NCBI GenBank assembly: GCA_964036045.1
Contig: OZ038379.1
Location: forward strand, 15,562,001-15,626,000
Length of the DNA stretch: 64,000 nt
Direction of reading: 5' to 3'
From: Eutreptiella sp. 'Long Island Sound 2002'
Taxonomy: Eukaryota; Protista; Euglenida
In this document: piece after piece, positions 3,565-64,000 of the stretch
Numbering within the stretch: position 1 is the stretch's first letter
Layout: every line of letters begins with the position of its first letter
The notes under the pieces: model-generated
Databases searched by the model: none
Told to the model about the DNA's origin: nothing
The model's input: the letters and a program-made list of their open reading frames with translations, nothing else
Program-made: the position numbers and the translations under genes

Positions 3565-6500
3565 GTGTGTTGATTGCGCATGATACCTGCCACCCTGCAT
3601 TGCCTGGCACAGCCTTTTCTCTTAGTTCTCTTCCATCTGAACCCCAAGCCATATCTCTCGGGGACGGTACTGAACCTGCCAACTTTGTGGGTTTTTGGGG
3701 GTCGGTGCCATTGTTGCCTCATTTGTGCCCACCGAGTGTCCCAGAGGGGTATGTGGGGTATATTTGGAAAGCCCTTGAAAAGGGCTATTTGGAACACCCT
3801 GGGTCTGCATGTTGTACTGACGACATCTTTGAGAGTTTTGTCCGTTTTGGACGGTGCCTGTGTTGCTTGCTGCCTCTTTTTGTCAACAGGCAGCTACCAT
3901 GTCTTCATACAAATTCACGCCACGGGCTGTTGCTTCCCCGGATGCACCACAAAAGCCTTTGACGCGCAAAAGGGCTCGCTCTGGGGGAAGAAATATGTCC
4001 CTGTCCACAAACAGGGGGATGTCTGCCCTAATGGGGTCCCCGCCCTGCCTGAAAAAAGCAATGCTGACAGTGACAGTGATTCTGAATAAAAATGGATAAA
4101 CGGTGCAGTGCTGTGTTTGTGTGCACTGTCCCATGTGTTGTGCTGCGCTGAAAAATCACAACCCCTCCCCCCCAAACCCATACATTTCTGAAATGGCGTT
4201 TTCTTGCAGATTTCAAAAAGTATACACATACCCCCCCCCCCAGGTGACGACATGTTTGCACGCGGAAGCAAAAGTTGCAGAAACTACCGAAAAGTGCCAA
4301 AACCCACAAAGTTGGCAGGTTCTGAATGTCCCCGAGAGATATGCTCATGTCCTCATGTTCATTGCTGTGCTCCTCATTTATCCCCAGGGAGAAAGTGCAC
4401 AGGGTACAGAGGGGCGGAGTGCCGCAGAGCAAGAGGGACTGCAGCAGGGCACAGGGAGAGGGTTGCAGCAGGGCTCGTTGCTGACACTGATCCGTCTGTT
4501 GTTTATGCGTTGCTGCAACTCAGGTAACCAACCTGCAATTCTGTTTCGCGTTGCGCCTCGTGGTCATGGTTCCCAGCCCCTGTTTCTCTTGCAGTTCCTC
4601 CCGCCACCCATGTCTCATCTCCTGCAGACATTATGGGACTGTTTACCGTGGCCTGAAAAAAGGCACATGTGAGATTGTGGCCATCAAGAAGGTGCTGTGC
4701 GGTCCGACTGAGGTCTAGGGTTGCGAGTTTAGAATTTCGGTTCCTACGCTTCCCACATATCAGTCTGTTGACCTTGGAACCCTCAATACCAATTCTGCAG
4801 CATTTTTTTTTAACTGCAGCAGGACCGCAGCATTGGTCTTTAACCACGCAGGATACTGGAGAACAATTTGTGGGCACCAAGGCTTGCGATGTGTCTTTTG
4901 CGTAGGGTAGTGTGTCTGATCTCAACCATTTTCGTTGCAGGTTGCTATCGACGGCCATTGGGTGGTAAGCGAGTTCGAAAACCTGATCCATTGTATGCCC
5001 CTCCGTTCTCTGCGACCACTGGCATTTGGATCTCTTGGACGCTGAACGAATGAAGCCTTGAGGGAACCTTCCACGGCCAAGCACTGTCTGCAAGGGGTTG
5101 CCCATGGGCGCCGCCGCATCAGAGAGCTCTAAGCAGGAGTGGGCAGGGGGAGTGCCAAGGTTCAGGTACAGTTGAGAAAGTTCGGATCACCGGTCATACA
5201 ACAACCACGGGTAAATGTATCAACACAGAAGCCGTGCAGGGGGTCTTGCCAAACCTCTTCTTCTTTGGTGCTTTTGGTTGAGCGAAATTCTCGAGCGCGT
5301 TTGGTGCAAGATCTTTCTCAGGGATGGGAGCTCGCACATGCCCAATTGTAGGCACCAGTTTTTGTGGCCTCATCCACAGGACTGTCGCATGTGTTGCAGG
5401 TCGGTCCAATTACGTTGTGCATTGTGAAGGATGCTACTACAGTGAGGAAGAGGACATGTTGTGGGTATGTGCTGGAGGCTGGATGGAGGCTAGGCATTGC
5501 ACCACTGAGCTTTCTTGTGCTCTGAGACGTGATTCTGATTTTGGCAGAAGCATTTGGGTGTGTCGAAAGTGATGGCCACGTTTTCACATCATCTTCACGT
5601 TCTTGTGGTATTTTTTCTGCCCGTTATGCCAACATACCAGGGCCAGTGTAGGTGCATGAAAAATTGGGGTCCGGGAAGTGATTGTGGGCTGCTGTGGCGC
5701 TGTATCGTGTGATTTTAATATTTTCACATAACGACATAGTTCTGGCGGATCTGTGAGGTGCAGGGGGGGGGGGGGGGGTTGGCGCACATGAGGTGCATGG
5801 AGGAGGGGGGGGGGGGTTGGCGTGTATGTGGCGCAACAGGTGGGGGGGGGGGGGCTGGGGGGGTTTGGCATCCAACAGGGGGTGGACAGTTGAGTAACAT
5901 CCACCACAAGTTCAGCAGCACCTGCGAAAAGTTGAGTAACATCCACCAACTTGGTGGAACCAGTAAGGCTTTATTAACTACGCGGGAGGCGGGGTTGCCC
6001 ACGCTGCAGTGGGATGAGACAGCAAGTGGAGCACCCCATTTTTGGAATATCGTACCACCGGGGATGGCATTGCAATTGCGCCAGGCACCAGGCCGGCGTG
6101 AAGTGGTGAGACAGGGCGCAGGGCAGTTAGAAGATGAGCTCCCAGAGACGACAACTATCTTCGAGACGCCACTAGATGGGCTGTGCCTATTCCACGCTCT
6201 GGCGAGAGTGTGGAACGAAGTGCACCCACAAGAGGCGCCACAGACGGGCCAAGGGATGAAGCGCAATCTGCTGGAAAAGATGGAGGACACCCCAAGCCGG
6301 ACAGTGGAGGGACAGACACTTGCGCAGATCATCAAAGAGGATGGGTGGGCAGAAGCACCGGAGGAGGGCCACAGGCAAGGGACACAACAAACACAGCAAA
6401 CACCGGAGACAACGCAGAAAGATGGCAAAACAAGGTGATGCAATGCGGAATTATGCACTGCACCAGGGGTAGAACCACGATACACATGTCATGGGTGTGG

Positions 6501-9500
6501 CACATGGAACCACAGACAGTGCGCGCCGCCGGGCGGAGATGGAGGACAATTAGGAGTGTGGTCGTGTGCGCAATGCCGCATGTGGAAGGTGGTGTTTATG
6601 TCAGTTGGGGGAAACAGTGCTGGGAAAAGGACGTGTGGAGTGCCTAGTCTGTGGAGACGACGTGAAGACCGCCGGGAAGTACGTGCGCAACGCCAAACAA
6701 TGTATCTCTGGGGGCATAGCAATAGGTGCATCAATGAAAAAACAAGGGCATTGTGTGAGTGCAACATCCCGCAGGTGCTCGTACACAGGTTCAAAAAGTG
6801 GCAGAAGAGCCACAACCAAGCCACCAGACAGCGAAGGGCAGCAATGGTGAAACAGAAACGGGAGCAGGCGGCGGCCCAGGACAGGTGGCAGCTAGGAACA
6901 AAAGTTTGGCTCACAGGGCCGCGGAGGGCAAAACTGAATGGAGCAGAAGGGAGCATCCAAGGGGAGGAAAATGGCTGGGTTCTAGTACAACTGGACCACC
7001 AAAAGGGAGGCAGAACAGTGGCAGTCACCCACGACCACTTGGGCGGCCTGACCCCAGGTAATGGCAATAGTAGGGGCAGTCGGGAGCAAGCTAGTAGCCC
7101 GCAAACAAGGAGAGCAGGAGCACAAAGGCATGACAGGGCGCCGGTGAGGCCACCTGCAGCAGCCCCCCACGTGGAGGCGGCCGTGTTGGTGCCTCATTGG
7201 TGGCAGGGGCAGCGGTAGTGGTGGTGGGTAGCGCAAGGCACCTTGCGACAGGATCAGCAGTGCGTCTGCAAGGGCTGCGGCAGGTGGAATTCAACGCATG
7301 TGAGGCCATGGTGGTGGGGCATGACAGCTTCAGAGTGCAGGTGGGCGTAACAAAGGGGCCACAACACACACAAGGAAGGGAAATTCGCGTAAAGAGAGCG
7401 AACGCTGTCCGAGTGGAGAGGCCAATGACAAACATGGCCCCCCAGCCACAGCCCCAGCACAAGGCCCAGCCGGTGGGGGCCAACCAACCAACCAACAGTC
7501 CCACACACTAGAGGATAGGACCCAGTTGCGGACATACCAGACACACTGCTAGGGAACTAGTACCAAGTGCGGTACCCTGGGGCGACAACAGAGGAAATGA
7601 AGCGGGCATACAAGCAGCTCAGTGTCAAGCTACACCGAGACAAAAACACACCACAAGGAGAAGGCTGAGGGACTATTCAAACAAATAGGGAAGGCAAAGG
7701 ATGGACTACTAGACACAGAGGCCCGAAGACGGCACAACGCCGACATACAAAGAGGGACAGGCGCCAACAACGGGAGGTACGCCATTGCAATAGAGGAGCT
7801 GCGACACATGGCCCCGGACAGGAGGGCAGAAGGCTAGGGGAACCAAACACGCTGACGATGCAACGACGCTTTGCATACGTGACCGTGGACTTCATGGAAG
7901 CGCACAAGTACAGTACGGGCCCGCGAGTGGAAGCTAGCCTACACACCGATGCCCAACATGACCAGGGGTGAGGTGTGGTACCTCATATGCCGAGGACTGA
8001 TGATGCCGGTGGTCCGGGTGCGCATCGTGGCCGTTGGTGTGTATACCCCGCAGTGTAGCTGCCACCCACATGGGGTGTGCTACACACATGGAGAGTGGCA
8101 ACCGGTTTTGCACCCAGATGGGGGCCTACCAGGAGAGAACGTCCTGGTCTCACAACCGGGCAGATTGCTGCCCACTGATCGCATAGCGAAGTTAATCGCG
8201 GCAGCCTACCGGAGGCGTTGAGGGGTTCATCATAACGCCCAGGCACGCAGATCCGACAGAATGCAGCACAGTGCAGCGCAACGCACATTAGAACGGCAGA
8301 GGGCAGCACGACGCCCAAGCACACAGAGCTGACAAAGGCGCACAAAGGAGATCAGCACACAAACCTCGTAGGCAGGCCCCGGGGGCTCGGATTCGGCCCC
8401 GCCAATGGGTGGGCGGCCCTATCCAAAAACTTCGGAGGTTACCCGGACTCGGCCCCGACAGGAAGTAGCCCTGCCCGGGTAGCCGCGCCGCCACGCCTCA
8501 TGGAGGTAGCGCAGCGCACAACGCAGCGCAGCACGCTAGAGCTGGTAGAGGCACACAGCGAAACTTGCCAGCACATGAAAGCACGCAGCACACAGTATAG
8601 CAGAACAAAGCAAAGTAGTGTACCGCACCAACAGCAGCCCAACACCCAACACCCAACACCCAGGGTGGGGGCCAGACCCACCACACGGGCACTTCACCCA
8701 CACACAGCCACCGCCGCCCACAAACAAGGCACGCACGTGGAGCATCACCAAGTGCCCACGACCCCACGCCCCAACGCCAACACGGCGCCCACCACACACG
8801 CAACCACCAAGGCCACACCTATACACAACATAGAAGGGATGCTTCCCTGGTGCACTCCCGGGAGCCATCACCATCCCGACCACACAGGGAGGAGAAGGCA
8901 ACCCAAACCTAAGTAAGGGGGTCGCCCCTGCGGGGCTTTGGCAGCCGGCTACGTGAGTCCACCCCTTGGTTGGTCGTGTGCAGTGACCACCAATGGTTTG
9001 GACGCTGCGTCTCATAAGCGTGCCCAAGGCCCCTGCACTAGGCCCTGGTGACGGAACTTAGCTACTCGCGGGCAGTACATGTTTTAGGTCACTGCCCAAT
9101 GGACAACCGCGTGGACAGCCCGGAGTGAAGTCCTCAAACAGGGAGCCCCTCAGCAACCCAGAAAGCAAAAGAGCAACAACACAACACATTCACCCCAGAA
9201 CAACCCCAACAAACACAAGTGACAGGTTAGTTTGTAGATTTGGAGACATGTGCAAAAGTGCCCAGTGCACCCAATTGCAAGTGGGACAACCCGACAGCCA
9301 CAAGGGGATGCAGGGAGCAACATGCTGCCCCCCCGGCGCCGCACACCAGCAGCAATGAGCATGCCAGCAGAAAAAGAAAGAGCCCGAAATAGGGAGAAAG
9401 GCAAGCAGCAAAGCAGCTAGGCACAGGGCCGCCCCACACACGGCAGTGAGACGAGCCCCAATAGGACACACAACAATACACAAGGGAACCATGAGGTGCG

Positions 9501-12500
9501 AGCACTACAGCAACCACCAAATGCGGCGCACACCGAGCGAGCCATCAGCAAACACCCCCCCCCCCTCCCTCTACAAGGTGCCCACGTACTCCACAAGGGC
9601 GGGAGCTGCGCCCCGCGCGCCGGGAGGTGCCCGCCATGGTGGGTGGCAACAGGGCCGTGACCAGCCAACCGCGCACTGGACAGTCCACGTCGTACGGAGA
9701 TGTGAAAACCTCATACGGGGGTGCAGGCGGGTGGGACAGGAGGGGGTGCGCGACAGGGGCACCCAGGAGCGCCAATAGACAAGGGGAGGAGCAACACAGA
9801 CACACAGAACGCGGGAGCCACACCAGGAGGGACAAGGGCGAGCACAGCAAACAAGGAGGAGGGGCACAGCAAGGCAGGAGAGGCAACCAGAACAGCGGGA
9901 ACAGGGAACCAGAATGGAGCGGATGGCAGAGCGTGTGCATGGGAGGCAGCGACAATAAAGGGGATGGCTTGGCCAGCCAGCCCCGTCGCTGCCGGGTGCC
10001 AGGGCAACCCCTGCTCAACCGGCATCAGGTGGGGGGTGTCTCCCGCAGCCCAGATGGGCTGTTTGCGCAACAGGAGCGGGAGCCCATCAGGAGCAGACCA
10101 GCCGTGAGGGGGAAAAGGACATATCGTGGACGGCCGGGACAGTGCGTGGAGGAACAGGGCACCTGGGCCTCACGCACACAGAAACACAGCGAGGCAACGG
10201 ACGGCCTGTGGACAGAGGCGCGTGGACAGCAAAAACAGTCAAACGACCCCAGCAACAACCAGCACATCCTCCATACGCCAATTATTGGGCACCGCTGACG
10301 CGCAAACGGCACACCATGCTACATTCAGCACAGCCGCAACAACCAGCACATCCTCAATACGCCAATTATTGGGCGCCGCTGACGCGCAAACGGCACACCA
10401 TGCTACATTCAGCACAGCCCCAACACACCAACTACTGGGCTCCGCGAACGCGGAAACAACACCAGCAAGGGCACCGGCCGCAGCGGCCGACAGAAAGCAG
10501 CAACCCGACGCAACATGCAAAGGGAAGAATGGGTGGCTGTCAAGGGCCCCGTAAAGGAGCAACAACCAGACGGAATGTCACACAGGGGGGCTGGGGGGGT
10601 TTGGCATCCAACAGGGGGGTGGACAGTTGAGTAGCATCCACTGAAAGTTCAGCAGCACCTGCGAAAAGTTGAGTAACATCCACTAACCTAGTGGAACCAG
10701 TAAGGCTTTGTTACCTACGGTGGAGGTACCCCTTTTAGCCACCAGCGGTAGCAAGCAGCAACAACGAGCATGCGTAAAATGGTTAAAAGTCAGAACTCTG
10801 TTGTGGTGGCTGGGATTTGGGCGAGCCTTTGAGTCTTTGGTAAATGAAACCTGTGAGTATCAAGTACAACGACACAAAGTTTGAGCAGGCAACTCAATAG
10901 CAACGGCCAGGACTGTGCGCTGCACATGGCAGATTCAGTTCTTCTTCTCTCAAAATCTGTCAAATTTGGCAAAAAAAATGCCATTTCTTGGCCGGCTTGG
11001 GTATCTATGATGTTTGTGGAGGGGGCCATTTGCATTGGAGTCAAACTGGATGATGAACAAACACGTTGGTGCACCGTTTGGTAGCTTTTGACTTCCAATG
11101 CTCACTTTTTTCCAATGTCACCTTCCTTTGCTGTGTTTGACTGCCATGTATTGCATTGGGCATTGGGCATCCTTATGGTGATAAAAAATGATGAATAGGA
11201 GCATTGGCAAGCTATTTCCACACCTTTCACCGCTTAAATGCTAGGGTCGGATTACATATGGAGATATAGTGGGGCTCACATGTGGTTCAAAAGGTGGTGC
11301 AAAATTATTTTTTCTACATTCGTCTCTGGACTACCTGGGGTGCATAAAGAAGTGGTTTTAGGCTGTTTTGAGCTGGTTTTGACCCATACCAGCCCATGCA
11401 AGCTCCCAAAAGGCCGCGAAAAGGGCCATTTTTGGACCGTAAAGGGGTCAAAAATGCGTTTTTCCAAAGGTGATCCTATCGTTTGGGATGCTAAAATAAG
11501 TGGTTGTTCAGCTATTTTCAATTTTCTTTGAGCCATTTTTGCTTGCTTTGCTTGCACAATTGTCAAAACTGCATAGATCATGTTAGATGGGAGCGCCAGG
11601 GCCGGGGCCTGATTTGAGAGGGTCTTTGAGGGGCTTCTTTTATGGGGACCTGTTGGGGGATCCTTCATAGAGCTTCTTTACGAGGTCCTGTAAAGGGGTC
11701 TTTAAGGGGGGTCATGGGCATTCTGAGAGGTTGTTCACCGGCTAGGGTCTTTCAAGGGTATCTTTCCAGGGACTCCTTTTGGGGGTCCTTTGGGGGGTTC
11801 TTCAAGGGAGTCTTTTCAGGTGGTCCTTCAAGGGGCTTCTTTAGGGAGGTTGTTTGGGGACCACTCAGCTGGTATTTCACGGTGGTCTTTAGAGGGGATT
11901 TCATAGCAGGGTCTTTTGGTGGGGTCATGGGTCCTTGCATTTGTCCGCAACCGTGGCCCAAATTTAGGTGGACATTGTTCAACTATTGGCGGGTGCGCCT
12001 AACTTTTGGTGGATGGTGGATGGTAGCCGGGTCCTTATGGTTCTCTTGAACATGGTTGAAAAATGGACCACAGCATGGCACCATGGCGTTAGAGAAGCCT
12101 CAGTGGGCGAGCAGAGTTGAGCAGAACTGAACCAGGGTTTTGGGTGTCCAGGCAGTTGATTGAACAGGTGAAGGACACACTGCGAATGGCCGAAACGTGG
12201 GCCGGCAGGTCAGGAGCAGTCATGCAGTGTTGACTGCCAATTTATGTCTGTGGTGCAGCATGGTGTCCCATTTCTGTTTTGCAGCTGGTGATGGAGTTTC
12301 TCAGCCACACGCTCGAACGGGATCTGCCAAATGGCCAGTATTTGAAGGAGGAGTTCATTGCTGGTATTGTGCAACAGGTGTGTGTTGTTCGAAAGTCATA
12401 CTGTCTCAGGGACCCCTGACGCCACAGCAGAGTTTTTAGTCCATCCGGCGTCGGTAGCCATTGGCATTCCCTGCGATTTTCTTTGAGACCTCTGGTACCG

Positions 12501-35963: not shown

Positions 35964-37282
35964 ATGGACTTGAAGATTGGGGACAGCGTCTTTTACACTC
36001 GGTCGACTAGGCTTCGCGTACCTGCGAAGGTAGCTGGCCATACGGACGAAGGGTACGTGGAGTTGGAGTACCTGCAAGATGGGGTGCGCGTCATCAACCA
36101 TCATTGCCCCATCGACGCCCTCTCCTTCGGTATCCCGAGTTGGGACTCACCCCCACCAACCCCCTCAAGTCCACCAGCCGCCGACGTCCCCGGTGATGCG
36201 ACTGGTGGCAGCCCTCTCCGTGGCCGTTCACCCACACCACCCCCCTCAAGTCAAACGGTGTAAGTCCACCTGTGTGCGTACCCAAGTTGCACGGATGGGT
36301 GCAGATGCCGAAACAATGGAGGAATTTTGGATGAAGTACGGGCACCCCGAGCTCCTCGACCGTGAGTCATTGTTTCGATTTTTTTTCTGGATGAAACACA
36401 CCCCACCGGCAGAGAGCGGTGCTTTCATGTCTCACGCAGAAGGTTCGGAGGTTGCCTGGCGGCAGAGTGTTGCCCGTGCTCGCGAATACCTTAACCATGT
36501 TGTTCAAGAGATTCGATGGGCCGAAAGGTTGAATCCTTTCAACCATTGTCCCCATTTTCCATTCTTTATGAAGCATTTCACAGACTCCATGCCCATCAGT
36601 TCCATTGGCGGGATATGGAGTGCAGACCTGTGGAATCCTAAGTATGCGTCGCATGTTTACAAGGTCACTGTTGCCGTTGATATGTTGGGCAACATTGTAT
36701 GGATTTGCCCCTTGGCCCCCGGGACATCAGCAGATGTTTTGATTTGGGATGGGTACGGACCTTCTCGTACCCGAGGGGATTTCTTTGATTTTGAAGTTGG
36801 GGGCCATGATGGCGCTTATAAAGGCCGGATTCATGTCATGGTGCCATTCATTGGAAGAAAGAATGGCACTTTGACAGCCCGCCAACAAGGTTACAATGAT
36901 GTCCATGGGTGGTACAGGGCACGCATTGAGCAGCTGTTTGCTCGGTTGTGGCATTGGGGTTTGGTTAGGAACATCTGGCGTGGCGGCCCCAATGAGTTGC
37001 ACCAGTCAGTCCGCATTTTGTTGCATTTCACTCAGTTTTGCATCCGGAGGCAAGTCCGTCACCCCCCCTACGGACCATGGACCATGGGAGCATGTCCCGC
37101 CTCAGGTTTGGACTGACCAAAGCAACTCGGCCGCCACGCAAGATGAGGCAGAGGATGAGGCGGAAGTGTGTGTTTTGTGTTGCCAAAGGCGCCCCACCGT
37201 CGCAGTTTGTGATGAGTGTAAGGAGCATTATTGTAATGAATGTATTGACACCCACACTTGTGGGACCAATGTTGTTTGTTAA
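35964..37282 (+). pseudogene. DDE_Tnp_4-type transposase, frameshifted, with N-terminal SH3/Tudor-like and C-terminal B-box-like Zn modules
   Basis: HFTDSMP (D), KYASHVYKVTVAVD, PGTSADV, HDGAYKG (D), YNDVHGWYRARIEQLFARL (E). Upstream frame MDLKIGDSVFYTRS...VELEY. C-terminal CVLC...CDECKEHYCNECIDTHTC is shifted out of frame by a 7-bp duplication at 37072-37085. Confidence 0.85.
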
Positions 37283-42807: not shown

Positions 42808-45800
42808 GTATGCGGCATGACTGGAGTGCTTTCTCATCAGGAATTTTTTCTGGACCCAATGAACAAACATCTTCATCGGTCTGCTTAGGCTGTGGATCCA
42901 CGGTGCCATGAGGTACAGTGCATCTGCCTGGGCTGTGGATCCACAGCTCCGTGCTTGCCTAACTCGACCCTCATGGACAGAAACGGTCGAGTTCTGACAG
43001 TGCAGCGCCGCTGTCGCCAGACAGCTCCCAAAACTGAAAACAATACGGACTGCCGTAGTCCATGTAGTCTGCGGAGAAGGCACTGGCTCTGCAATGCCAT
43101 GCAACAACGAAACTGCCCCTCACTACGAGACGTGCCCTTCCCGTGCCCCATTCCAGGCTGTCCTGAGAGTTGTGTGCCCATCCAGACCAGCATCCCCCGT
43201 ATCCTTCTCCAGTGGCAAAAATCTCATCAAAACCGACATCATTGGCCAAAGTGAACCCTACGTGAAGGTCTTCTACGCCTCAACCGGTGACAAGGGCCAC
43301 GAAGTCTACAAAACGGCTCGCAAGGAGGGCCGCGACGTGTCGTGGCACGAGACCGTGGAGCTGCGACCCCCTGGAGGCGACCAGACGGTGATCTTGCAAG
43401 TGTGGGATGATGACAAGCTGGGGAAGGATGACTTCATGGGACAAGCCGTGGTGTCCATTGCTGAAGCAGGAGAATACACGCTGGATCTGCAGCCCCGCCC
43501 ATGGAACGACAAGGATGCCAAGCTGGTGGACAAGCATGGGAGCCTTGGCCAGTTGATGGTTGCGGTCCATGGGGCGCATTTGGCCAGCCAAACAATCGGC
43601 TATCCCCAGACCAATCCCGCACGCACGGCATCGATGCATTCGCATTCGTCTGCAATGACCTCGGAGCGCCAGAAGTCTTTCACCTCGAAGACGTCCTCCA
43701 AAGGAGGGGAAGTGCCGATGGGGGTCGTGGATTTCACGATCGTCCGGGGCCTGGGCTTGTGCAAGATGGACTTCAGCAAGGGTGCAGACCCATACGTGAC
43801 GATGCAGTTTGAAGGCCAGACAAGCATCGCTGCCAAGACGCAGGTAGTACAACCCCCATGCTGACAAGCGCTGGCTTGGCTGTGCGGCACTGTGGGCCGC
43901 ACTGGATCGCATCGGCCACGGCATTAGGCGATCCCGTTTTCAATGGCACTGTGCATTTCAATGGCTGTCTGCTTGCATTGACGCGCTCCTCTGCCACCAC
44001 CTGAGTCTGGTACAGTGTTAAGAAGGCTGTTGCTGTGGGTGCTGTTCTTCTAGCCTCTGCAGTGCGTACAGTGTGTGAAGAGGATGCACCCCGTCGGTTT
44101 GAGCCAGCGCTGGCTCAGCAGCATGATCCAAATATGTATTTAGATAGAGCGACAGGGGTAATGATGCTGCAGGTTGCCCCATGACATCAACCTCATCCAT
44201 GGGGACCTTGCAACCTCATCCATGGGTATCTTGGTGGTATGCACTGTTTGTGGCACGGTTTTGCACTGTCACGAACACACTACTATATGAACTGATGGCG
44301 ATGCAAGTTGTGTGGCAGGGACGACTGGAGCCTAATGCATGGCGGTATGCCTGACCACTTTACTGCCTCTTGCGGTGGTATGCAGAATGGTCTGGCTTGG
44401 TGCCTGGAGGTGTGCCCCTACCCAGACCTCAGTTGTGTGTGTGTGTGTGTGTTTAGGTCAAGAAAAACACTTTGAAACCAGAATGGCGCCAGCCCTTCCG
44501 CATTCGGATGCCCCCAGCAGACATGGCCCGGCATTTGGTGATGAAGTTCTCGGTCTGGGATGATGACAAGCTTTCAAGTGATGATTTCATGGGTGTGGCG
44601 TACATGCCCATTGGCGCAGGCATGGATGGCACACACAAGTTACAGCTGATGCCCCGCCCTGGAAATGCCAGTGACAAGAAGCTACTGCGGAAGCATGGTT
44701 CGTTGGGATCGCTGATTGTGGAGGTGAAGAGCAACCTGGCAGAGGACTACCCACCCATGCACAGTTCCGATTACCAGGTGTTCTGCTGCAAGAAGAACGT
44801 TGGAAGGAGAGGGAATCTGCCACTGCAACAGCGACTGTTCAACTAGATGCCTGCAGCGAGTCGCGAACTGCAATGGACCAACTGTCAACCACAGTGGGTC
44901 ATTTGCCCAACGGCAATCTGGAAGGGGCGTAATTCAGCCAAGAAAACAAAACAACAAAATGAACAGCTAGTCAGGGACACACACCGTGTCAACGTGCGTT
45001 TAGCCACTTTGAGGGTGTTCTGTGTGCTGTGCACGCGCTGTGTGGAAGAATCTGGCTAGGATATGGAGGACGGAAATATGGGGTTTTTCGGTGAATTAAT
45101 GTCGGATTTCACCGGGGGCAAAAAATCGGCTGTTTTCAAAGTTGCTCCTGGACCATGTGCGATGCCGAAACACTTGTTTTTAGCCCTTTTTTTGGCCTGT
45201 GGCGGCCCGTTTTGGTCCTGTTCTTAACCCCTGCTGTCTCGGGGGCCCACATGTGGGCAAAGTGGCTACATAACCCTTGCCATTTCGGGGGTCCCCAACG
45301 CGCAGCGCAGGGACAAAATCAGAAGTGGCCATTTGACCCCTTCCGTCTCGGGGGCCTAGGGCGATCCGAGACTTGCTCGGTTGGGGGTGGCACGGGTGCC
45401 GTCCGAAGGAAGGGGGGGGGGGGGGTTGGGAAGACGGGTTTCCGTGCCGGCCCCGGTGTTTTATGTTTATTTTGGGGAAAACTGTTGGCGCCAAAGGCGC
45501 TGGGAAATTTTTTGGGCCTCCCGAGGGGAATTTTTTTTTGTTTCACCCGATGTGTCTATGCTCAGAATACCGAGAATTTTGTGGAGAAAACGGGTGAAAA
45601 CCATTACTCTGAAAAACATCCCAACGCTCTACTTGAGCCATCCCAGAGCCTAGCCACATCCAAGTGTTGAGCCAAAAACTCAACGATGGCAGCCCGCGGC
45701 GAGGGTTCCAAGTTGGGACGTGCCCTCGCGAATCTGGCCTGACTATTCCACAATGGGCCTGTCTGAGACCTCGCATGTGTCTCTACATCTCTACACACGT

Positions 45801-58000: not shown

Positions 58001-58659
58001 GAATATTTTAATATGGGTTTCGAGTGTACCGCACGAGTGTTGGTGTTGCATAGAAACTTTCCTTGGGTTCCTACGTATTTTTAACGTGAAGTTATGTCCA
58101 TGGAGGGGCATGGCATACCATGGTGGGAGCCACTTTTAAGGGTATGTGTTATATGGATGGTATGTGCTTCGCTATGCTCACGCCCATGTTATATACCTCC
58201 GTTTGTAGGAAGATATGTGGAGTCATACGTGGCAAGGGCTTTGCCCATGTCCCAATGGTGAGCTCCATAGCGCTAGACTAAGTCTACTGCACATATAGTG
58301 CATGTGGGAAGGCTTACAGAGCGACCCACAAGCGCCACTATCAATTTTCCCATTTGTTGAGCGTGTCCATGGAAGCGGGGAAGTTGGGATGGTTGGGGGG
58401 GGGCAGGGTTTGCAGGGTCACTTTTTTTTTTCTTAACCAGAGCCGAGGAGATGGGGTGTGATGGTGTGGTGATATTGTGGTAGCTGGTCGCTACTTCTTC
58501 CAGCACCACATCTGTGAAGAGCTCTATGTCTGCCGGGGATAAAGACTCAAATTCGGGGAGGGTAGACTCGCACCATCGCGCCAGGGGGGCGAGGGAGTCG
58601 TGGTGCTTGGAGCGCTCCTGCTCCGTCAGTTTGCGGAAAACTTTCCTCTTAGTGGTGGG

Positions 58660-59420
58660 TGTTTCAGAGAAGGGGTGGGGGGGGACTTGAGAGGTGTACG
58701 TGACTGGGTGGCGGTCTGATGTTTTGTCGTCGGTTTGGACGGTTGCAGAGGTGGGGGCAAAAATTCCGAGGCCGCCGGGGAGAGCAAAATATGGTCGAGT
58801 CGGCTGCTGCTTGCCCTGTACGGGGTGGGGTATCGGGAGAAAGACCGCTCGGTCGGGTGAAAGTGCCGGAAGGTATCGATGAGGCGTGGCGGGTCGCTCG
58901 TGACCTGCCTGCGGAGCCATGGCCACTCGTTGTCCGTTTGGAGGTTCGCTCCGTCCAGCTCAGGGCACATTATGCAGTTGGTGTCTCCGCCTAGGACGTG
59001 GTTGGGATACTGATGCATGAGTGGCCGCAGGATGTTTTCAATTTTTGAGCGGTGGACGTCTGCGCTCGGGGCGTATACCGAGACCAACAAGGTGGGCGGG
59101 GCCCCCGGGGGGGGGAGAACGGCTGCCGCCAGTAGCCCTACAGTATCGAGTCGGGGGAGGGGGGTAACGAAACGGGCGAGCCGGGGGGAGCAAACCAAAA
59201 CGGAGCCGTGCTCGCCTCTGGAGTGTTTGTCCTGGCTGATGTTCGAAACAATGGCGGCTTTAGTGCCCGAACCGTACGCGTATACGTGGGGAAGGATGGG
59301 GGCGTGATTGATTTCTTGGAGGAAGAGGATGTCGAAGTCGTTCTTGAGGTGTCGGAGAATTTGGCTGCTCACTATAGGTTTCTTTCGCAAGTTGTGCGAC
59401 AGAAAACGCAGTTCTGAGGG
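58660..59420 (-). pseudogene. Apurinic-like (APE/EEP) endonuclease of the LINE
   Basis: LRFLSHNL, DILFLQE, VSVYAP, LGGDTN, LIDTFRHFHP, SRLDHILLS, then after a frameshift at the A-run 58759-58763 TSDRHPV. Confidence 0.93.
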
Positions 59421-59733
59421 GAGGGGTATGGGGGGGCGGTGAGGCCGTTGGTACCCCTTCCGTAGGCGCGTACCGGACTTCGGGGGGGGCGGGATAGGGG
59501 GGGGCTGGGGGGGTGCCTCGGAGTCTGGCTGGCTGGGCTGGCTAAGGCAACGGAAATGCTGAATTTGGTCGGCTGGTATTCCAGCCGAGGCGAGCTCTTC
59601 GTCTAGCCCCTTGCCGGTGACTGAGGAAGCCGTGACTGGGCCGGTGATTCACTGAATCTTGACCCTTGTGTTTTCAGGCAGAGGGGGCTGGAGAGCGCAG
59701 GAGGCGGGTATCCGGCCCTCTGGCTTTCGTGGG

Positions 59734-60290
59734 TTAGCTTGCCTGTGGGATGTGGCAGAGGATTAGAGCGAGCCGAGGGATGGTACGCGGGACAGTTAGC
59801 CCAAACACTTCGTCTTCCCTCCGTCGGGGTATCCTGTGGTGCCACTCATGGCGTGCGGCCCCCGTGAGGACCAGGAGAGAGCGGGCAAAGAAGCGGATGC
59901 GGAAAGAGTCCCCGTTGGAGGGGTTTTTAAAGAACATTGTGGTGTCCGACTGGGAACCAAAAATGGACACCGGGTCGCCTAGCAAGGGGTCGTCCCTGTG
60001 GTAGCCGATGCCCTCTCCCGGGAGATACATTGTGCCCGTGATTTGGTTGGGGGGGGGTGCGAGAGGCCCAGTCGCCCCAGCGCGGCATTGTAGGTTTGGA
60101 TGATAGAGGAAAACTCTTCCGGGATGTGGGACGTGGCGTTGACTTTGTTCGGGCCGAGGTATGCGTGGCCGAAGTGTTGGACTGAGCGCCCGTGGTATTT
60201 CTCCCACGTGTTGTCGTGGAGAACCTTTTTTACCGTTTCCTCTTGGCTCTCGGAGAATACGTCGCGGACGTAATAAAAACCAGTAGGGAG
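59734..60290 (-). pseudogene. AlkB-family 2OG-Fe(II) dioxygenase domain, one frameshift at the G9 run 60049-60057
   Basis: LPTGFYYVRDVFSESQE...W...RSVQHFGHAY, then PNQITGTMYLPGEGIGYHRDD (HxD), RSLLVLTGAARHEWHHRIP (distal His), RTIPRLALIL (2OG-binding Arg). Confidence 0.88.
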
Positions 60291-60299
60291 GCGGAGGTC

Positions 60300-61286
60300 G
60301 ATTTGTATCTCCGAGACGGGGGTGGGGGCATCGTGGTCGGGGGGTAGGAGGGTGGTCGCCTCGCCTCCCAGCGGAGCAAGCAGCGGGACGCTGGCCTCGG
60401 ACATCTCTTCAATGCGGTTTGGTCCCGGCGTTGGCGTAGCGGCGTCGGCGTCGTCCGGTGCTGCGTTCCACTCGCTGATGCGCTCAGTCAGCCCCGTCGC
60501 GGGCCTATCACGAAGGGCGGAGACGAGCTGGGACACGAAGGCCGTGGACCCTAAGGCGGCGCCCGCTTGGAGGCGTTGCACGATGGGTTGCTCGTGCTCG
60601 GCCACATCCGGGTCTTGAGCGGGGAGTATCTTCTCGAGGGCGAGGAGGTTGCGGTGTAGTGGGGCAAAGGCAGCGTCTCCATATTTGAAATCATGCGCTA
60701 GCAGCGCGGATTCCTCCTTTTCGTAGACCACGAGGTGGGCTTGTTGGTGCTCGTAGGGAGGTCGCGTGGGTTCGAACGACACGTACGGGCCAAGGAACCC
60801 CGCTTGGACGCGCAAGTCGAGAGCATGCGCCGATCTTGGGGCCACTAGGAGCACGGCGGTCTTCGGGGCCTTAGACGAGTCGTATGAGGGCGGGGCCGGC
60901 GTTGCGTGGGCTTGCTCGGGGGCGCCCGAAGGCGCGGACCTCGTATTGCCGCCGGACCGTGACGAAAACCGCACCAACTGCCCATCTATGCCATGAAAGA
61001 GAACAATGCCGCATGAGTGGAAGGAGCGGATAGCTAGCGTTTGGACTCCGGTTTTAATGACGTCGCACGGCGCGTGTGTGGTGTCAATCGCCACGACCAA
61101 GGAGTCTTTAGACCGGAACATCGCTCCTAAGGGCGGTGAGGCGCCCCGTCCTCCGGGCAGGTTGGCGATCATCATGCTGAGCATTTCCGGGGCTTGTAGG
61201 TGTTTGTTTCTTTCCTTCTGGTCTCTAGCGATCACGGCTCGATACACTTCAGTAGTAGGCAAAGCGTGCATGTCCATGTCAAGGAG
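60300..61286 (-). pseudogene. ORF1-like N-terminal region, possibly with RRM-like folds
   Basis: Continuous open frame of ~330 codons leading into AlkB; alternating hydrophobic beta-strand patterns (DSLVVAID, GIVLFHG, TAVLLVA, AHLVVYE); the fold call is inference. Confidence 0.55.
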
Positions 61287-61559
61287 TGGGAAACCAAAGT
61301 GAACAAGGCCGCAACCACCAAAATCCATCGCTGCCTTGTGAGGAAAACTAGGATCAAGCGCACCATCAACGAGGCGCTCAACCCCGTGGAACGCGGTGAA
61401 ATAACCCTGAAGCGCCCGGGCGCCACACAGCTCGTCTCCACCCCTAAAGAAGTGAGCTCTATTTTTCTTCCACAGTGCTCACCCTGGGGGGCAGCCTCGA
61501 ATACGCACCGCCGAGCACGCTAGTGGATCGCCTGCTCACACACTCCCCAACCTGCCCTG

Positions 61560-62900
61560 AACGCACAAAACACAGCCCTCTCCCTGACATTACCTGGGAA
61601 TCATTCCGCAACACGCTCAAGAGGTCAAAGCCCAACAAGGCGGGGGGGCGGGACTTCACAAACAACTACACTTTGCACATCTCCCCCCCCCCTGTCCAAC
61701 AATTCATTTGGAGGGTATGTAACCACTACCTCCACCAACCGTTGCCTGAGAAATGGCTGGAAGCCAACAATATCTTACTTTTTAAGAAAGGTGACGTGAC
61801 GAACCCTGTAAATTACAGGCCTATAGCCCTGCTGAACAGCGTTTACAAAATAATTGCAACACATGCCAACCGTGAGCTACTGGCAGCAGCCATCGAACAC
61901 TCCATCATACACCCCACCCAGCTCGGCGGGCTTCCCAACCGCAGATGCCAAGACCACATTTTCAACCTTTTATGCACGTTTCGGGAATCAGTCGGTAGCT
62001 ACAGCCTCTACATTGATTTCAACAAGGCTTTCAACTCCGTCCCCCACACCACCCTCTTCACAGTGCTGTCCCGCCTGAACTTTCCCACGCACCTTGTAAA
62101 CCTCATTCCATCCTTGTACCGTGCCCCCCGTGACTTCCCGGTGGTGTCAGGGCACACCCACTCCTCCCGCCTGCAAACCAGAGGTGTTCGGCAGGGATGC
62201 CCCATGTCACCCATCCTTTTCTGCCTTTACCTGAACGTTCTCCTCTTCGCCCTGCCGTCTCACGTCACGGCACCCCCCTCCCCACACGAGTCTGGCCACG
62301 CCTTCGTTGACGACCTCCTCTATCGATCAGAGGATGGGGACTGCATACAACAAATTTTGAATTTCTTCGACACAGTCGCCAGGGAGTGGGGCCTGGACTT
62401 AAACCTCAGCAAAATCGAAATCCATGCTATGGGAACAGACCCCCCAGAACTTTCACCTCCCCCTCGGGCACCCCCCTGTCAACCACCAACCAGAAGACGG
62501 AGCAACCACACAACTGCTACAAATACCTAGGGGTGTACATCTTCACCGCCAACCACGAGGCGCAAACGCTGGCATTAGCCAAGTCGGAAATACGCTCCTT
62601 TTTCACAACCCTCCAACCCCTCTGGCTCACCCTTTCGGAATACATTCTCTTAGTAAACGTCCAACTCATCGCTATTCTTTCCTACCGCCTCATGGCACAC
62701 CCCCTGGCCCTGAACGAGTGGGGAGCCCTCCAGGCCATGATCTGGCAAAATATTGCACATGACCCCTCCCCAGACAAGGCCAGCAAAGTTTCCCGCCTCG
62801 TCTCTTCTAAGGACCGCTACACCCCCCGCCACCAGGCAGGCTTAGGACTCCGCCACTTCACTTTTTCCATTTGCATGGCCCTGGTGAACGACGCAATCCA
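61560..62900 (+). pseudogene. Non-LTR reverse transcriptase, frameshifted near 62430-62470
   Basis: KPNKAGG, LLFKKGD...NYRPIALLN..YKI, QLGGLPNR, YIDFNKAFNSV, GVRQGCPMSPILF, AFVDDL, GLDLNLSK, YKYLGV. Confidence 0.95.
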
Positions 62901-63539
62901 GTACCTCAACGGGGACGGCCCAGCCTCAACAAACGAGTCCTTTTCTGAAGCGATGCTCTCCACCACACGCAACCCAATCCAAGACACCGTCATGGACGCG
63001 TGCCACACCATAGGCCTCCGGTACCACAGCACCGGACTCTGGGCCTCCTGCCCCCCCTCCCTCTTCCCTCCGAAAGAGAAAGTCCAAGTCCGGTTCCTAG
63101 CCACCAAACCAGCACCACAATACAGCAAGTTCGGCAACAGGTTGAAACGAACATCCCAAGACCTAGGGTTCCACCTAGGAACAGTCACGGGGGTGCATAC
63201 AGAATCGGCCACAGTCCAGTTCTCGGACGGCACCACCCACACCATCAAAGACCCCGGTCTCCGCCGCAACGAAAAAGAGTACACCTTTCAAAACCCAGTC
63301 ATTTCTGTCCGCCCCCAACTGGCGCGGCACCACGAACTGCTTACCCCTCCCCTTCTCCACCCCCAAGAGTACATCCTCAACCCCCCCCCCGGGCCACACA
63401 TGGGAGTTCTGCTCGACTCGTCGCTGCATGGCAAGCTGTACCGGCTCCCAGATGAACCTCACTCCCTTGACCCCGATGACCTCGAAGAATGGGGTTGTGA
63501 AGCAGCCCTTGCCCTCCTCCTCACATCGTCCCCCGGCAC

Positions 63540-63950
63540 AACATGGGTGTACTTGGATGGCTCAGCGGGCGCCTTGGGCTACGGGTCTGCAGCCACCCTG
63601 TTTTTCCCAAATGGCTCCAGATGGGTGCTGTGCCAAACGTCCCCATACCAGTCCTCAGAGGGATCGGAGTTCTGGGCGGCTATTATGTTCCTACGGTGGG
63701 CCCTTGCATCTCACCCGCACCTCACCTTTGCCGTGCTAGGGGACAACTTCCACGTTATCACTGTTCTCTCCCCGAGAACCCCCCCAGACCTCCCGTCACG
63801 CTCGCCAGCCGGCACGTGGGAATCCTCTCTTCAGTCCATCCAGGCCTCCCTACGCCCAGGGATGATCCCGGGTTGGGGGTGGATCAAAGGGCACGCCGGT
63901 TTTGTGGGAAATGAAATCTGGATGCTTACTCAAAGTGGGCCGCCCACGTG
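63540..63950 (+). pseudogene. RNase H domain of the LINE
   Basis: WVYLDGS (D), QSSEGSEFWAA (E), VLGDN (D), WIKGHAGFVGNEI; a 1-nt shift near 63920 would restore xDAYSKWAA. Confidence 0.9.
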
Positions 63951-64000
63951 ATGGTCTGGGACCCCTCCCTCCTTCCCCCCCCTCCGATAGGGTGCATATC

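Follow-up and report, generated by a model that had tools for sequence, protein, structure and literature searches.

LINE ORF1 proteins are RNA-binding chaperones, and the accessory modules described in them are few (esterase, PHD and zinc-knuckle domains, for example). Enzymes of the AlkB family are known from other RNA-templated elements. In plant RNA viruses (Betaflexiviridae, Closteroviridae and others) the AlkB domain lies within the replicase polyprotein and is held to repair m1A/m3C in viral RNA. Among retrotransposons, the Ty3/Gypsy (Tat/Ogre-like) elements of Phalaenopsis orchids encode an ALKBH5-like AlkB protein (PMC9289625). The orchid protein is an RNA binder with m6A-demethylating activity in vitro, and was proposed in that study to act against epitranscriptomic control of its element (PMC9289625). 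That parasites replicating through RNA templates encode erasers of base modifications for their own use is an idea so far supported only for the plant RNA viruses and this one orchid LTR element.

The stretch of DNA analysed here (64,000 nucleotides; the window) contains a copy of a retrotransposon that adds a further setting for an AlkB domain. The carrier is a true LINE, with an APE-RT ORF2, target-site duplications, an A-tail and 5′ truncation and inversion, and AlkB forms the C-terminal domain of its ORF1 protein (ORF1p); it is integral to the LINE and not a separate gene. Judged from sequence, the ORF1 of this LINE would include an enzymatic domain new to such proteins, in parallel to the known plant-virus and LTR-element cases. 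A full-text literature search, with Repbase outside its range, found neither a LINE-borne AlkB nor an AlkB in Euglena transposable elements.

With respect to the described systems, the LINE and the orchid Ty3/Gypsy elements are alike in being retrotransposons that encode their own AlkB-family 2OG oxygenase. The orchid carrier, however, is an LTR element in which AlkB occupies an additional ORF, falls in an ALKBH5/ALKBH9/10-like clade and represents a recent gain in one plant genus, whereas the carrier here is a non-LTR element whose AlkB is fused to ORF1p, is ALKBH8/6/Ofd2-like and has been kept across ORF1 families that are 24-26% identical. The plant RNA viruses are likewise RNA-templated genetic elements, and Foldseek matched the LINE AlkB to Grapevine virus, Little cherry virus and Picornavirales polyproteins with E ~1e-8 to 1e-10. 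Their AlkB accompanies an RdRp replicase, whereas the carrier described here is a reverse-transcribing nuclear element whose AlkB has its closest sequence relatives in ALKBH8/6. The remaining architecture comes closest to that of APE-RT-RNase H LINEs with an RRM ORF1p (the I / Tad1 / ingi-L1Tc-like group), with which the element has in common the bicistronic layout, the APE-RT-RNase H ORF2, target-site duplications, an A-tail, 5′ truncation and twin-priming inversion; over RT and RNase H it is similar to those LINEs of fungi and arthropods that also bear RNase H. It differs from that group in the putative enzymatic AlkB domain on ORF1p, and in that full-length copies start with the host spliced leader.

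The window copy was aligned to a full-length copy of the element (L051; 8453 nt, with element positions counted from its first base), and the following features were assigned in window coordinates.

58353..61287, minus strand: inverted 5′ segment of one LINE insertion, corresponding to element positions 4314 down to 1379 (blastn, 92.2% over 2937 nt)
61278..64000, plus strand: direct 3′ segment of the same insertion, element positions 4318-7043 (blastn, 91.6% over 2726 nt)
61278..61287, no strand assigned: junction of the inversion, where both segments align over the same 10 nt (GTCAAGGAGT) and element positions 4314 and 4318 abut
59737..61287, minus strand: ORF1 remnant, about residues 386-903 of the 903-aa ORF1p, whose translation matches ORF1 of the intact copy L052 from MDMHALPTTEVYR on
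60651..60875, minus strand: predicted RRM-like fold, ORF1p residues ~524-598 (AlphaFold2 pLDDT >90); coordinates approximate, projected from an intact copy
59734..60302, minus strand: AlkB-family Fe(II)/2OG dioxygenase domain and ORF1 stop (PF13532 match; ORF1p residues ~715-903)
60049..60057, no strand assigned: G9 run (read as C9 in the coding sense, where it encodes Pro-Pro-Pro), lacking one base relative to the in-frame state and thereby causing the -1 frameshift that splits AlkB
59516..59733, minus strand: ORF1-ORF2 spacer (217 nt in intact copies); coordinates projected from the ORF maps of L046/L051/L052 via the alignment
58353..59515, minus strand: N-terminal ~388 aa of ORF2 including APE (Exo_endo_phos), collinear with L052 ORF2

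Overall, the window copy is a single 5′-truncated insertion with its 5′ part inverted, the pattern expected from twin priming. Because the two segments belong to one twin-primed insertion, AlkB, APE, RT and RNase H came in a single retrotransposition event, even though RVT_1 (E=4e-29) and RNase_H (E=1.4e-3) are found, from 61475, on the strand opposite AlkB and APE. The direct segment carries the ORF2 RT at ~61790-62425 and RNase H at ~63541-63915 and continues past the window end, and the first ~385 ORF1 codons are absent through 5′ truncation. By subfamily the copy is one of the older members, with ~92% identity to the young subfamily, and it is dead, being 5′-truncated, 5′-inverted, frameshifted and altered by R897C.

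An earlier note on this DNA had described an AlkB-like motif set in frame after an ORF1-like region and ~0.3 kb upstream of an APE endonuclease on the same strand. The position of APE is as described: Exo_endo_phos (E=1.6e-9, ORF 58629-59390) is on the same strand as AlkB and starts ~0.2-0.35 kb downstream of the AlkB stop. The window translation also contains an AlkB-type motif set on the minus strand at 59734-60290, although the set is in frame with ORF1 only in part. Specifically, GRSVQHFGHAY lies in the ORF1 frame, in a 449-aa ORF (59979..61328, minus strand) that has GRSVQHFGHAYLGP as its tail, whereas GIGYHRDD, EWHHRIP and RLALILC lie in the -1 frame, in a 157-aa ORF (59734..60207, minus strand). 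Similarly, of the iron triad and 2OG-binding arginine noted before, HxD..H and R891 are kept in the window copy, whereas R897, in the 2OG-binding R-x5-R motif, is replaced by Cys. The C-terminal AlkB piece of the window matches Pfam 2OG-FeII_Oxy_2 (PF13532) with E=3.8e-5 and 24.4 bits, which falls short of the curated cut-off of 31.2 bits solely on account of the frameshift that splits the domain. In the same profile check, which the note had proposed, copies with the domain intact all scored above the cut-off (32.2 bits for L052, 31.7 for L051, 53.2 for L047 and 34.2 for L053).

Since naturally intact copies were found, the frame repair and consensus building that had been suggested proved unnecessary. 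The copies L046, L048, L051 and L052, which are 99.5% identical to each other, carry PF13532 at the C-terminus of a 903-aa ORF1 (the last ~190 residues) and an ORF2 of 1590-1637 aa with Exo_endo_phos, RVT_1 and RNase_H. Intact copies run from the spliced leader through ORF1 (903 aa), a 217-nt spacer and ORF2 to an A6-7 tail, and ORF1p itself is ordered as an N-terminal region, RRM-like folds, a disordered linker and the C-terminal AlkB. The reading of this locus as a LINE carrying AlkB is thus borne out in copies that hold both the ORF1-AlkB and the APE-RT-RNase H ORF2. The element is also abundant: a first look at the 2.28-Gb genome returned 2054 candidates for the AlkB piece, many of them within open frames of ~980-1000 aa, and 1108 candidates for PF13532. 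The earlier note had allowed that other copies might lack AlkB, that the AlkB segment might have a target-site duplication of its own, or that it might match a single-copy host gene. What we observed instead was that all 29 further loci of the window subfamily are collinear over ORF1, AlkB, spacer and APE unless truncated (as are L017, L019 and L023-L025), that the AlkB segment lacks its own target-site duplication, and that the nearest host gene is only distantly related.

The insertions themselves bear target-site duplications (18 bp for L051; 17 bp, with one mismatch, for L048) next to the A6-7 tail. At the other end, full-length copies start exactly at ACTTTCTGAGTGTCTATTTTTTTTCG, which is the Euglena gracilis spliced leader (L048:58-83, L051:244-269 and L050:232-256); the same sequence has served as an SL-specific primer in E. 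gracilis (PMC5654406). This leader identifies the host as a Euglena-type alga; a dinoflagellate host was considered and rejected, as DinoSL was looked for and not found. As full-length copies begin with the spliced leader, the template for retrotransposition is a trans-spliced mRNA.

Conservation of the arrangement extends well beyond the subfamilies represented by the window and its closest intact relatives. In the family represented by L047, ORF1 is 26% identical to that of L052 and alignable end to end, and ORF2 is 40% identical; a third family, represented by L053, has the same layout with ORF1 24% and ORF2 47% identical. In both families the position of AlkB is unchanged and its H, D, H, R and R residues are intact. 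L052 and L047 agree at every one of these residues (H816, D818, H870, R891 and R897), and most of the 35 copies sampled retain them. Invariance of the Fe(II) triad and both 2OG arginines across ORF1s that are 26% identical argues for catalysis having been retained. Comparison of subfamilies, another of the suggested checks, gave AlkB pN/pS values of 0.11-0.21 between young and old subfamilies (six independent copies; p 1e-6 to 3e-10), indistinguishable from those of ORF2 (0.20-0.21) and of the rest of ORF1. By these ratios the AlkB domain is conserved and under purifying selection in the LINE. Moreover, the 99.5%-identical copies (L046, L048 and L051 versus L052) still differ at pN/pS 0.16-0.28, which suggests several master copies that were concurrently and recently active under selection, rather than neutral decay after insertion. 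The LINE family has been recently active.

The homopolymer that disrupts the window copy is itself variable. Across the 39 nearest copies, the span containing it ranges from 556 to 563 nt; the commonest length, 558 nt, is the in-frame one, and 17 of these 39 copies, collected by an unbiased DNA search, keep the frame across it. A programmed frameshift was considered and rejected on the basis of this spread and its in-frame mode. In our first sample (L002-L030), older copies were all shifted by -1, +2 or +5. That sample had been collected with a protein query containing 46 out-of-frame residues, which selected such copies, so that the frame common to L002-L030 is an ascertainment artefact. The hypervariability of the Pro-Pro-Pro homopolymer in AlkB may reflect real slippage or homopolymer error in the assembly.

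In terms of its place in the AlkB family, the closest solved proteins by sequence (phmmer) are human ALKBH8 (E 2e-15 to 6e-13), S. pombe Ofd2 and ALKBH6, which together score 1e-10 to 1e-15 against the LINE AlkB. ALKBH3 is a weak match (E ~0.6), and phmmer with the LINE AlkB returned no match to ALKBH5, ALKBH2, FTO or E. coli AlkB at E up to 10. By sequence, then, the LINE AlkB is placed outside both the repair-type clade (E. coli AlkB, ALKBH2/3) and the m6A-eraser clade (ALKBH5, FTO), with which it has only the general fold in common. This has a consequence for function, as the earlier note had proposed removal of m1A, m3C or m6A: with ALKBH8, ALKBH6 and Ofd2 as the nearest relatives, that proposal is weakened, and demethylation is not the default expectation. 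ALKBH8 is a tRNA mcm5U hydroxylase. An exhaustive profile search collected 4668 relatives, in which the AlkB-only proteins include ALKBH8-like eukaryotic ones and many stand-alone proteins of ~185 aa. A domain tree of 115 sequences was star-like with long LINE branches, and showed neither a donor nor monophyly of the LINE AlkB domains.

The predicted structure of ORF1p is consistent with this placement. AlphaFold2 modelled the AlkB domain with pLDDT 92-96 over residues 720-900, and also gave confident domains at ~55-260, 280-495 and 520-650, with a disordered linker at 661-715. The AlkB model is superposable on solved AlkB homologues and has the predicted double-stranded beta-helix fold; Foldseek matched it to ALKBH6 (7vjs; E=3e-14, TM 0.74, rmsd 2.8), to Ofd2 (TM 0.74) and to ALKBH8, as well as to phage, giant-virus and RNA-virus AlkB domains. 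For the middle region of ORF1p, the top Foldseek matches were all multi-RRM proteins, for example Prp24 and U2AF65. VIA-align gave residues 524-598 a Z of 8.2 to IMP3 RRM12, with dozens of RRMs at Z 6.5-7.8; as these Z values are middling, we name the fold RRM-like. It lies ~120 aa from AlkB and is also present in L055, a homologue that lacks AlkB (see below).

Human ALKBH8 (RRM-AlkB-methyltransferase; 3thp/3tht), ALKBH6 (7vjs) and S. pombe Ofd2 (5yl6) are thus the best matches by both sequence and structure. In ALKBH8 an RRM precedes AlkB, and in the LINE ORF1p a predicted RRM-like fold lies upstream of it. ORF1p differs in that the RRM-like fold and AlkB are parted by helices and the disordered linker of ~55 aa, and in that a Pfam scan found no methyltransferase domain after AlkB; the protein stops ~6 residues past the AlkB core. 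The methyltransferase that would be expected behind AlkB in an ALKBH8 orthologue is lacking. In further contrast to a single-copy host gene, the LINE AlkB resides within a 903-aa ORF1p in many hundreds of copies.

Taken together, these observations lead us to favour, with some reserve, a model in which the C-terminal AlkB of ORF1p in this bicistronic LINE is a tethered oxygenase that acts on the element's own RNP. ORF1p would bind its own LINE mRNA through the predicted RRM-like domains, and the Fe(II)/2OG oxygenase tethered to it would thereby be brought to the element's own RNP. Its target would be a base modification, carried by the RNA template or by newly made cDNA, which it would hydroxylate or take off by oxidation; left in place, this modification would obstruct reverse transcription or flag the RNA to host control. 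More tentatively, we suggest that this is a LINE lineage in which an active oxygenase on ORF1p serves as a cis-acting eraser or rewriter on spliced-leader-capped mRNA or cDNA and is needed for efficient retrotransposition, which would be a first for LINEs.

Other roles for the domain have to be set against this model. Heavy 5mC methylation and promoter 6mA characterise the Euglena genome. AlkB might edit DNA or chromatin, stripping 6mA or alkyl marks from the target site or from the newly inserted copy and so shaping the epigenetic state of insertions, and Euglena retrotransposons have been reported with adenine methyltransferases, engaging 6mA and 5mC (bioRxiv 10.64898/2026.05.21.726589). The LINE AlkB does show similarity to the C. 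elegans DNA 6mA demethylase NMAD-1 (E 1e-3 to 0.07 by sequence; Foldseek E=1e-10). This similarity is nonetheless much weaker than that to ALKBH8, ALKBH6 and Ofd2, and AlkB is carried on the RNA-binding ORF1p rather than on ORF2p, the protein that contacts target DNA, such that we consider a DNA-directed role unlikely. A role modelled on ALKBH8, in which the domain would act on host tRNA or other host RNAs (by wobble-uridine hydroxylation or similar) and tune translation or RNA metabolism for the element, draws on ALKBH8 ranking first or second among solved relatives in sequence comparison (E 2e-15 to 6e-13) and on the way Foldseek lays the RRM-like domain and AlkB together on the RRM/AlkB of 3tht (~400 columns). 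The rmsd of that superposition is ~19 Å, however, so that only the domain order is common; the RRM-like domain also occurs in the AlkB-less L055 and was therefore not acquired together with AlkB; and the methyltransferase that ALKBH8 needs to make its substrate does not follow AlkB here. We regard this role as quite unlikely.

It is also conceivable that AlkB is not a nucleic-acid enzyme at all, and is instead a structural or chaperone module or a protein hydroxylase/demethylase of the kind proposed for Ofd2 and ALKBH4. Ofd2 is indeed among the top matches, and the domain is minimal (~190 aa), without an elaborate nucleotide-recognition lid. Tethering to RRM-like folds points, however, to nucleic acid, and the invariant Fe(II) triad and 2OG arginines described above would be hard to reconcile with a purely structural module; we hold this reading to be very unlikely. 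Finally, the rearranged and frameshifted state of the window copy could raise the suspicion of a chance juxtaposition, in which a few copies had transduced or captured part of a host gene, or of an assembly artefact. The same architecture is found in hundreds to thousands of copies and, with purifying selection, in three divergent families; L039, the host paralogue that comes nearest, has a Diplonema orthologue and is only distantly similar. Intact copies, collinear loci and pN/pS together refute this explanation, to which we give next to no credence.

Should AlkB in ORF1p be under selection for such an activity, the idea of parasite-borne base-modification erasers would be extended to non-LTR retrotransposons and to a distant eukaryotic supergroup (Euglenozoa). 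The element would also offer a tractable natural system, with hundreds of near-identical intact copies, an mRNA 5′ end defined by the spliced leader and clear catalytic residues, for mutation, and so for finding out which modifications of RNA or DNA hold back reverse transcription or single out retrotransposon RNA to host control. A practical implication is that many AlkB "genes" in euglenozoan genome counts may be encoded by transposable elements.

The host does have AlkB-family genes of its own, several of them apparently single-copy (L031, L033-L036 and L038-L040). Only one, L039 (G000:C12:59425713), belongs to the ALKBH8/6-like clade of the LINE domain; it scores 104 bits against the LINE AlkB profile, compared with at most 30 bits for the other host AlkB genes, and is distantly similar. 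Its grouping with a Diplonema ambulator transcript identifies it as a genuine host gene.

Related loci were also found in metagenomes. The contig ERZ6864647 (L055; 8978 nt) contains a related LINE with an ORF1 homologue, with 22% identity over ~600 aa including the RRM-like part, and no AlkB domain is detectable in it before ORF2. AlkB is thus dispensable for the wider LINE lineage, and in the lineage of L055 it was either never gained or lost. Two metagenomic ORF1-AlkB homologues, P0024 (L056, 1025 aa; a cluster with n=19) and P0025 (L057, 1158 aa), are ~24% identical. No APE or RT was detectable in the 1.6 kb downstream of the ORF1-AlkB of either, and for this reason they were not counted as LINEs.

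AlkB domains occur in this genome in other repeated contexts as well. At L054:11538-12401 (= G000:C7:9716034-9716894) there is a member of a repeated family of 287-380-aa ORFs that are almost wholly AlkB (PF13532, 52 bits), with at least seven copies >90% identical and many more that are 35-41% identical. A LINE ORF2 ends ~1.1 kb upstream of this ORF, and no ORF1-AlkB is recognisable ahead of that ORF2; the AlkB ORF may be a 3′ ORF in some other lineage of LINEs, or may belong to a transposable element of another kind. At L053:2816-10584, an ORF1-AlkB and ORF2 LINE is inserted in a polyketide-synthase gene, and the public gene call at this locus merges PKS domains with the LINE AlkB.

Elsewhere in the window, an ORF for a DDE_Tnp_4 (PIF/Harbinger-type) transposase is located at 36079-37116 on the plus strand, and an ORF with a C2 domain at 43094-43864, also on the plus strand. 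A further repeat may lie in the 6 kb from 5000 to 11000, where AT skew is strong (up to 0.5) and G+C is raised.
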